Source: Piromyces finnis finn (taxonomy: Eukaryota; Fungi; Neocallimastigomycota). From it: a stretch of DNA of 64,000 nt. The notes under the pieces were generated by a model that was not told the origin of the DNA, did not search any database, and worked only from the letters and a program-made list of their open reading frames with translations. Both the position numbers and the translations under genes were made by a program. The stretch spans positions 496,001 through 560,000 of the forward strand of contig MCFH01000002.1 of assembly GCA_002104945.1 (NCBI GenBank), given 5' to 3'. Numbering within the stretch: position 1 is the first letter of the stretch; every line of letters begins with the position of its first letter. Shown piece after piece: positions 10,929 to 13,900 of this stretch.

Positions 10929-13900
10929 ATGTTAAAAAGACTAAGAACAAATTCAGAATATGGAGGAATAACTTCTCTCTCAATGCAAAATAAAAACGAA
11001 CAAAATTCTAATTCTTATCCATTAACTTGTTTAGTTCGTTGTCATGGACCAGATCCAAATTCAGAAAGGGCCAAGCATCATTTATTAAATTATACAAAAT
11101 ATCCTTTTATATAAATCACTTTTTTATTATTTATATATATTTTGATGTTGTTATCATTTTATAATACAATTAAAAATCAATTGAATTTAAAGTTATTTCC
11201 CTTAATATATATACACGCATGGTCATACCACTCTTTCGGCCTCAGGTGTATCATTTGGTATTCCAAGTGATTCATATAACGTTGATACTGATGAAGATCC
11301 AGAAAATGTTTCACTCATTATTGTAGCACATGCTAATATTGTAATATATTTTATTAATTTTTATTACTTATAATAAAATCATAATGCTACAATTAAATAT
11401 ACTAATTTAATATTAATCTCATTAAAATTACTTAAGATAACACCATTCTTAAATCTTGTAAGTAATAATAATAATAATAATAATAATAATAATGATTAAA
11501 AGTATTCAAAAAAAAAATTTTTTTTTTTTTCTTATTTAAACAATGATACAATGATACATTTGAAAGAAATCACCAATTTCTGAAGAAGAAATTCCAAATC
11601 GCCTTATTCCTGGTACTGGAATTGAAGTTTTGTTTAATGATAACGAAATATGGCATTCAGCACAATTAATAGATATTGTAGAAGCAAGAGGTGTAATGGA
11701 TGGTGTACAAAAATTATCGCAAAAAGATAATGAAACATGGGAAATTGGATTTAGTCGTGGATTACCATTTGCAGATTTAACTACTCCAACTGGAGAATTT
11801 TCAATGAAAAATGGTTAATATAATATATTTTATTATATTTTGTATTTTTTTTTTTAAAAAAAAAAAAAAAGAAAAAAATAGTATAAATTTCTTAAATAAT
11901 TTTTTTTTTTACAATAAACATAATAATAATAATAATAAAAAAGTTGATATTGCTGGTTTGGCAATTTTAAAAGTTATCCTTCCAAGAGATAAATGGCAAT
12001 CAAAATTAATGGATACCCTATTACCAACTGCTATTCACCCTCCAATTGTAATATAAAAATGATTAATATAATATAAACTCAAATATATATTTTTATAATA
12101 TTGATGATATTGTTCCCTTTTTTATAAAAATTTTTAAATTTTTTTTTAAAAAAAAAAAAAACAGCAAGGAACCCAACTACTTTTAACTGGATCACCATTT
12201 GGTATTTTAAATCCAAAAGTTTTCTTAAATAGTATAACACATGGTATTATATCAAATGTTGTAGAAGGACAGTTAAATGAAATCAATTTATTAATGACTG
12301 ATGCAAGAATATTAGCAGGATATGAAGTAATATTAATATATATAATTATTTAATTTATTAAATTATTTCGTAATATGTTTTTTTTTATAATAAAATAATA
12401 ATAAATAATGGAAAAATATTAAATTAAATAAACAGGGTGGTGTGGCAGTTGAAAGAAATACAAAAAGATTCATTGGTCTTATTATTCCACCTTTAAGAAA
12501 GAAAAATAGACATGGTGTTGAAGTAGGTTTGATTATTCCAGCACTTACCATTAAACAAACAATTTCAAAATACATTAAATCCCAAAGTAAAGAATTGAAA
12601 GAATCAAATGATGAAATGACAAGATTAATAAGTGAAGCAAAACATTCTGTTGTTATGATTTCTGTTAAAAATACATGGGCATCTGGTATAATTGTTTCGA
12701 ATAGCGGTCGTATCCTTTTAATTATTCTATATAATATAAAATATCTTTATTACTTATCATGATAATATTTATTTTAAAAGAAAGAATAATGTCCTTAACA
12801 TTTATTTTTATTATGTAGATATTATTACAAATGCACACGTTTTATATCCAATATTAAAAGATGAACCTGACATAAAAAAATGTTTTGTTAATGTTAGAAT
12901 AGATCATCCATACAAACAAGTAAATATATTTATATATTCTAAATTAAATTTATATTTTATTGTTAAAATAATAATTATATACTACTTAACAATAAAAATT
13001 GTTAAAATGTAATAACGTTTTAATATATAAATCTTAAAATACATTTTAATATTTTGAATAACTACTTTTGATAGTGGATAAATAATGTTAAAGTATTATT
13101 TGTTTCACATCCTTGTTGGGATATTGCATTATTAAAAATACCAGAAGGATATGATTATATAACGAGAGAACTATCTATTGCAGAAATACCCATCAGCTCG
13201 TAAATACCACATAATAGTTTTAATTTTAAAAATAGAAATAATATATTAACAACTCTATATAATTCTATATAATAGACAAAATTTAGAGAAGGCGGTTTCT
13301 GTAGTAGCTATTGGACATAGTATATTTGAACCATCAATAAGTAAATATTCATTTATTTGTTTATTTATTCAAACAATTTTTTTTTCTTTTTTTAATAATA
13401 TAAAACTGATTTTTAAAAATTTATAAAGATTTACAACCTACTATAAGTCAAGGAATTATTAGTAACGTAGCCAAAGTAAATGAAAAGCCAATATTAATTC
13501 AAGCAAGTTCATCAATTCATAATGGAAGCAGGTAAATATTTTTTTAAAGTATAAATATAACGTCCTAGATTAAGAAATTGATTTTAAGTTTATTATTATT
13601 TAAATTTTAATTTAGTGGTGGTTTGTTATTGTCATTACCTCCAAAATCTCGTCCTCAATTTCTCGGTGTTCTAGCATCAAATATTCAATTGTCCATGAGT
13701 AATTCAAGCTCTTTATTACCAAAAAATGAAAATAATACAGTCATTCATTTAACATTGGCAATTCCATGTGAAGCATTACATGATATAAATATATATTTTG
13801 ATACTGAAGGTAATATATAATTATAATTAATAAGAATCATTTAGAAGAATATTATAAAAATAGTAAACCAACACAAATAAATAATTTTTAAAATAATTAT

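Follow-up and report, generated by a model that had tools for sequence, protein, structure and literature searches.

The DNA analyzed is a 64,000 nt window of Piromyces finnis contig MCFH01000002.1 (positions 496,001–560,000), and coordinates given below are positions in this window unless another sequence is named. The coding region at positions 10929–14677 (plus strand) consists of 14 exons and has a predicted product of 699 amino acids that ends in CKL, a PTS1-like tripeptide. The model matches the public protein ORX59942.1. There are 13 introns, 11 of which are ordinary, i.e. they begin with GTAA, GTTA or GTATTT and end with AG, and two of which are U12-type. Six of the 11 U2-type introns are in phase 0; the first U12-type intron is in phase 2 and the second in phase 1. 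An (ATT)n microsatellite of approximately 270 nt is found within the last intron, at positions 14006–14274.

Sequence similarities identify the gene product as a processing protease of peroxisomes (glyoxysomes), of the DEG15/TYSND1 type. Its homologues go by the names glyoxysomal processing protease and peroxisomal leader peptide-processing protease, and the plant homologues with the first of these names are found at E-values of about 1e-40. Proteases of this family have two trypsin-like halves, the His and Ser motifs TNAH(V/L) and GxSGG in the C-terminal half, and a C-terminal PTS1; in the model, the motifs are present as IITNAHV and NGSSGG, and the C-terminus is CKL. Proteins of relatives show Pfam Trypsin_2/Trypsin matches. 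Pfam searches with single exons of the P. finnis gene gave no match, which is due to the shortness of the pieces. The C-terminal sequence is CKL in P. finnis (end of the gene, positions 14675–14677) and in Piromyces sp. E2, and SKL in other relatives. A PTS1-type C-terminus would imply a peroxisome-like import route in this strict anaerobe.

The first U12-type intron is at positions 11099–11216 (plus strand). It is of the AT-AC subtype, is 118 nt long and lies in phase 2; the assignment is based on its signals, the reading frame, the cDNAs of relatives and the public protein. The 5′ splice site ATATCCTTTT (positions 11099–11108) matches the minor-spliceosome consensus /ATATCCTT, and the same donor is present in Neocallimastix californiae and in two other early-diverging fungi described below. 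The branch-site motif TTTCCCTTAAT is found at positions 11196–11206, with the presumed branch A at position 11205, 11 nt upstream of the final base of the intron. Positions 11199–11206 of this motif, CCCTTAAT, are complementary to the GUAAGGA of the U12 snRNA candidate of the genome. The 3′ terminal AC is at positions 11215–11216 and is fixed by the cDNA join of relatives. The intron therefore has the features that mark the AT-AC subtype: a /[AG]TATCCTT donor, a TCCTTAAC-like branch site about 10–20 nt from the 3′ end and AT...AC termini set by the mRNA join. An alternative AC acceptor at positions 11213–11214 was rejected, as it shifts the frame and would leave two extra bases in the mRNA, which are absent from the cDNAs of relatives.

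Exon 1 extends from the ATG at position 10929 to position 11098 and ends in phase 2 with the bases AA. Exon 2 (positions 11217–11340) encodes (K)HGHTTLSASGVSFG...AHANI, a conserved N-terminal motif of the protease family, and contains no ATG in frame. Both exons (plus strand) are supported by the frame and by the cDNAs of relatives. Joining position 11098 to position 11217 restores a Lys codon (AA/G) and gives the sequence ...HHLLNYTK-HGHTTLSASG..., with the frame open into the following exons. The base at 11098 is not the same as that at 11216, nor is the base at 11099 the same as that at 11217, so that moving the two boundaries together would change the mRNA. A U12-type AT-AC intron with this in-frame join had been proposed by the sequence-only reading. 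The donor, the AC and the branch site, with its A 11 nt from the intron end, are all read directly from the DNA, and the join is found again in the cDNAs of relatives and in ORX59942.1. Both the observation and its interpretation hold.

The second U12-type intron is at positions 12710–12818 (plus strand), is of the GT-AG subtype and lies in phase 1. Its 5′ end is GTATCCTTTT, and TCCTTAAC is found at positions 12792–12799, 20 nt before the AG. The intron directly precedes the exon with the catalytic His and interrupts the sequence G-H-IITNAHV. It is spliced out in all four cDNA contigs analyzed. The corresponding intron in N. californiae has the form GTATCCTTTT...AG.

Transcript evidence comes from the four contigs. 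A profile-free search with exon 7 found protein P0001, which is encoded uninterrupted on a 1233-nt JGI contig (L007); the lack of interruption shows that L007 is a relative's transcript after splicing. Exon 4, used to scan JGI metagenome/metatranscriptome contigs, gave L008, L009 and L010, approximately 2.5 kb each, which are spliced mRNAs of relatives with 77%–95% nucleotide identity per exon. Alignment of L008, L009 and L010 across the 11098/11217 junction is gapless over 40 + 40 nt (3/3), and all of L007–L010 are gapless likewise across 12709/12819 (4/4). The nucleotide differences around the junctions are mostly at third codon positions. Retention of either U12-type intron is seen in 0/4 contigs, and L008 keeps one U2-type intron.

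The protein encoded by L010 is 100% identical to N. californiae protein P0010. When L010 is compared with the N. californiae genome locus (L013), identity is 94%–100% per exon block; the exon-2 block that immediately follows the junction has 95.7%. The orthologous intron in this locus is at positions 1683–1913, is 231 nt long and has the termini ATATCCTTTT...ATATATAC. This comparison is a same-species cDNA-against-genome proof for the N. californiae intron.

The P. finnis protein ORX59942.1 is annotated as “hypothetical protein BCR36DRAFT_316117”, has a chain length of 699 aa and was found in the 90% cluster of P0012. Of its 699 residues, 698 are the same as in the 14-exon model, and the sequence includes YTK-HGH; the 11098/11217 junction is therefore already annotated. 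The match also identifies the source of the DNA as P. finnis. The sole difference is at residue 99, which is V in the public protein; the GT-AG splice at the exon 2/exon 3 boundary (11340/11437) gives I, the residue present in all relatives. A shift of this boundary by 4 nt during alignment of a transcript to the genome would yield V99, and this pattern suggests that P. finnis transcripts were the basis of the ORX59942.1 model. In addition, four public runs from one organism contain 0.46–0.48 of the sampled 31-mers of positions 10900–13800. The expected share is 0.473 for exons only versus 0.525 with the AT-AC intron retained, thus the observed share is a hint that is consistent with splicing but is not decisive. 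Splicing in P. finnis itself rests on the public model, which is probably transcript-based, and on this match of the 31-mer share.

Positions 11099–11216 are thus best read as a genuine U12-type AT-AC intron in the early part of the DEG15/TYSND1-type protease gene of P. finnis, with a probability of about 0.92. The exon join, the signals, the conservation of the intron among fungi and the existence of the snRNA genes are shown by the data, whereas the dependence of excision on U11, U12 and U6atac is inferred. By the textbook pathway, the U11/U12 di-snRNP would recognize the ATATCCTTTT donor, and the branch site CCCTTAAT, which lies 11 nt from the 3′ end, would base-pair with GUAAGGA of U12. 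Next, U4atac/U6atac.U5 would join, and excision at AT...AC would then join AA/G as the Lys codon.

A different possibility is that the intron is a real U12-type intron that is not constitutively spliced and serves as a regulated, often-retained “gate” limiting expression of the protease. The gene contains two minor introns, minor introns are spliced slowly in animals, and the U2-type intron kept in L008 shows that retention occurs in the data. However, the count of 0/4 for retention of the U12-type introns argues against such a gate. Larue and Roy (PMC10639083) also argue that minor introns have persisted in a largely neutral manner, and in a fungus they found no regulation linked to the cell cycle. 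Regulated retention appears improbable on this evidence, with roughly one chance in ten.

The genome was searched for the components of the minor spliceosome, and snRNA matches were judged against the Rfam gathering cut-offs. The four candidate genes are located at C189:428380–428555, C112:211500–211648, C90:253883–254011 and C152:317514–317628. The U12 candidate, which has an Sm site and GUAAGGA, scores 66.6 bits (cut-off 53), and the U6atac candidate 52.1 bits (cut-off 33; L002 positions 1501–1649, i.e. C112:211500–211648). The U4atac candidate (L004 positions 1501–1639) scores 49.2 bits, just under the cut-off of 53, and the U11 candidate (L003 positions 1501–1615, i.e. C152:317514–317628) scores 38.2 bits, just under the cut-off of 39. 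The U11 candidate has an Sm site and the conserved AUCAAGA stem-loop (GGAAUCGAUAUCAAGAGAUUUCG; stem-loop III). The 5′ start of this candidate is AAAGAAAAGUUUU, without the GGG by which human U11 pairs with CC in the donor. Farther downstream, at a distance of about 550 nt (L003 positions 2162–2325), is a match to a SNORD14-like C/D box snoRNA (52 bits, below the cut-off of 64).

The U4atac and U6atac sequences fit each other closely. U4atac CGUCCUUAUCU and U6atac AGAUAAGGACG form a perfect 11-bp stem II, which is followed by GGGAU/AUCCC, and the changes relative to the human pair are compensatory. The duplex energy is −37.2 kcal/mol versus −24.3 ± 4.4 kcal/mol for shuffles. Human U6atac has an AGC triad; P. 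finnis U6atac has GGC at this position, and a compensating change in U4atac (UGCCA) keeps stem I paired. A further difference from human is the 5′ splice-site box of U6atac, which is GCCGA in place of the donor-pairing AAGGA and therefore pairs poorly with the TCCTT of the donor. A second U6atac gene, of AAGGA type, was not found in the genome, where U6atac has one locus only. Dávila López et al. (2008, PMC2396436) describe this “CC variant” of U6atac from other lineages with minor introns, namely cnidarians, Acanthamoeba, Physarum, oomycetes and a moss.

Candidate protein components are represented by domain matches above cut-off to PF18036 (SNRNP25-type, ubiquitin-like; 35 bits) and PF05253 (zf-U11-48K; 27.9 bits). 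A search of the genome with the PF16021 family (PDCD7, 59K) gave no match, a result that does not show absence. That this organism has a minor spliceosome was part of the sequence-only reading and is supported by the candidates for all four minor snRNAs, of which U12 and U6atac are above the cut-offs and U4atac and U11 just below them with diagnostic motifs. A search for U11/U12 proteins had also been suggested; the families searched gave the SNRNP25-type and zf-U11-48K domain matches and none for PDCD7.

The position of the AT-AC intron is shared by six genomes. In each the intron is in phase 2, in the codon five residues before T-[LF]-[ST]-A-S-[GA]. The intron is AT-AC in P. finnis and N. 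californiae. Two other early-diverging fungi, L011 (GCA_015852335.1) and L012 (GCA_003990785.1), have the donor ATATCCTTT at the same codon and in phase 2, and this donor is conserved in four fungi. The AC termini of L011 and L012 are presumptive, being placed from frame and homology only. The distance of the branch motif from the 3′ end varies: it is 11 nt in P. finnis, which is canonical, and 29 nt in L012 and 81 nt in L011 when counted from the presumptive ends. In the N. californiae intron a CCTTAAC-like motif was not found near the 3′ end, and the sole one is 193 nt upstream.

These properties bear on whether the major (U2-type) spliceosome removes a real AT-AC intron at this position. 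A few AT-AC introns are removed in this way, and the non-pairing CC variant in the U6atac box and the N. californiae orthologue, without a canonical branch motif near its 3′ end, could be taken in its favor. However, AT-AC introns of the U2-type carry major-type donors, ATAAGT-like, while the P. finnis donor is the full minor consensus ATATCCTTTT, accompanied by CCTTAAT 11 nt from the end. The conservation of the donor in the four fungi is also against removal by the major spliceosome, as is the complete set of minor snRNA genes (U4atac and U11 just under the cut-offs). The 11 ordinary introns of the gene, moreover, all begin with GTAA, GTTA or GTATTT. Removal by the major spliceosome is accordingly given only a few chances in a hundred, and a U12-type intron removed by the minor spliceosome remains the preferred reading.

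The G+C content of the window is 20.4%, and this affects the value of the splice motifs. RTATCCTT is found 10 times in the window where 7.6 are expected, and TCCTTAAY 9 times where 8.4 are expected. Single motifs are thus near chance frequency in this AT-rich DNA and provide a lead only; proof must come from transcripts and homologues. A combined scan for the donor, CCTTRAY and a matching terminus 8–21 nt past the branch A gives three sites versus 0.35 expected per shuffled window. Genome-wide, the strict combined pattern has 111 matches versus 79 in the reversed control (1.4-fold). One of the three sites in the window, at positions 21313–21264 (minus strand), was rejected as a chance match that is antisense inside the plus-strand open reading frame at positions 20970–21662. 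This trio, GTATCCTTAC ... TTCCTTAAC ... AG, is only 50 nt long and illustrates the false-positive rate of motifs used by themselves.

That the motifs at 11099–11216 are likewise a chance match, with the gene starting elsewhere or with other splice sites in use, is the least probable of the readings at about one chance in fifty: the frequency of the single motifs, the false-positive trio and the low genome-wide excess are in its favor, but it is contradicted by the exact join in three spliced cDNA contigs of relatives and in the public P. finnis protein, by the lack of an in-frame ATG in exon 2, and by the boundaries, where a one-base shift either way alters the mRNA and an AC ending at 11214 breaks the frame.

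The homologous plant genes have an intron at the same place. The DEG15 genes of Arabidopsis (At1g28320-type; intron at L014 positions 727–818) and Marchantia (L015 positions 807–990) resemble the fungal genes in having the intron in the same codon and in phase 2, and differ in that the plant introns are U2-type, GTGAGC...AG in Arabidopsis and GTAAGT...AG in Marchantia. The shared codon and phase in other early-diverging fungi and in land-plant DEG15 indicate that the AT-AC intron is old. The position of the second U12-type intron is common to L011 and L012, where the intron is U2-type, and no intron is found at this position in the Arabidopsis or Marchantia DEG15 genes. The clam homologue encodes residues 1–274 in a single exon and has no intron in the region, and P0015 is an intronless homologue on metagenome contigs; neither helps to decide the ancestral intron type. 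A small gene neighboring P0015 displays a Cas12f1-like_TNB Pfam match (L016 positions 1011–1349).

A scenario that would account for the distribution, put forward tentatively at a little under even odds, is that the minor intron of DEG15/TYSND1 predates the split of fungi and plants. It would have stayed a U12-type AT-AC intron in several early-diverging fungi, become U2-type in land plants and disappeared from animals, and the second intron would have switched type within fungi in a similar way. If this is true, one gene documents two independent U12-to-U2 conversions. The comparison of fungi with plants is a modest piece of evidence on how introns at conserved positions change type.

The signals of the P. 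finnis intron are those of AT-AC U12-type introns in metazoa and plants (Tarn and Steitz 1996; Incorvaia and Padgett 1998, as cited in PMC2396436), i.e. the same /ATATCCTT donor, a TCCTTAAC-like branch site 10–15 nt from the 3′ end and an AC terminus. The absence of a polypyrimidine tract and the non-zero phase are also shared. Minor introns and minor snRNAs have been reported in P. finnis and N. californiae (Larue and Roy 2023, NAR 51:10884, PMC10639083). The species, the signals and the minor snRNAs are the same as in that report, and the intron at 11099–11216 is one instance of the introns described. In its accessible portions, the paper names neither this intron nor its host gene. A literature search found no paper pairing TYSND1 with a minor intron.

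Minor splicing in P. finnis is thus already published and the intron is already correctly spliced in the public model, which makes 11099–11216 a well-supported ordinary example with little weight as a discovery. Its use lies in providing a clean, textbook-like reference for minor introns in a genome so AT-rich that motif scans by themselves give many false positives. The novelty that remains is small and consists of the intron position shared with plant DEG15 and of the annotation errors in relatives.

Gene predictors had been expected, from the sequence of the window, to truncate this gene. This is not the case for P. finnis, where ORX59942.1 is full length and includes the junction. It does apply to two other fungi: their public models, P0008 and P0009, begin only after the homologous AT-AC intron and omit the conserved N-terminal exons behind it (L011 positions 2068–2660, L012 positions 2494–2750). 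U12-type introns therefore derail annotation in relatives, with two public models lacking N-terminal exons and one missing nine residues. The latter is the Piromyces sp. E2 model P0123 (OUM63602.1), which mis-splices the second U12-type intron to give NTWAS-D-IITNAHV with loss of GIIVSNSGH; this model is also N-terminally partial.
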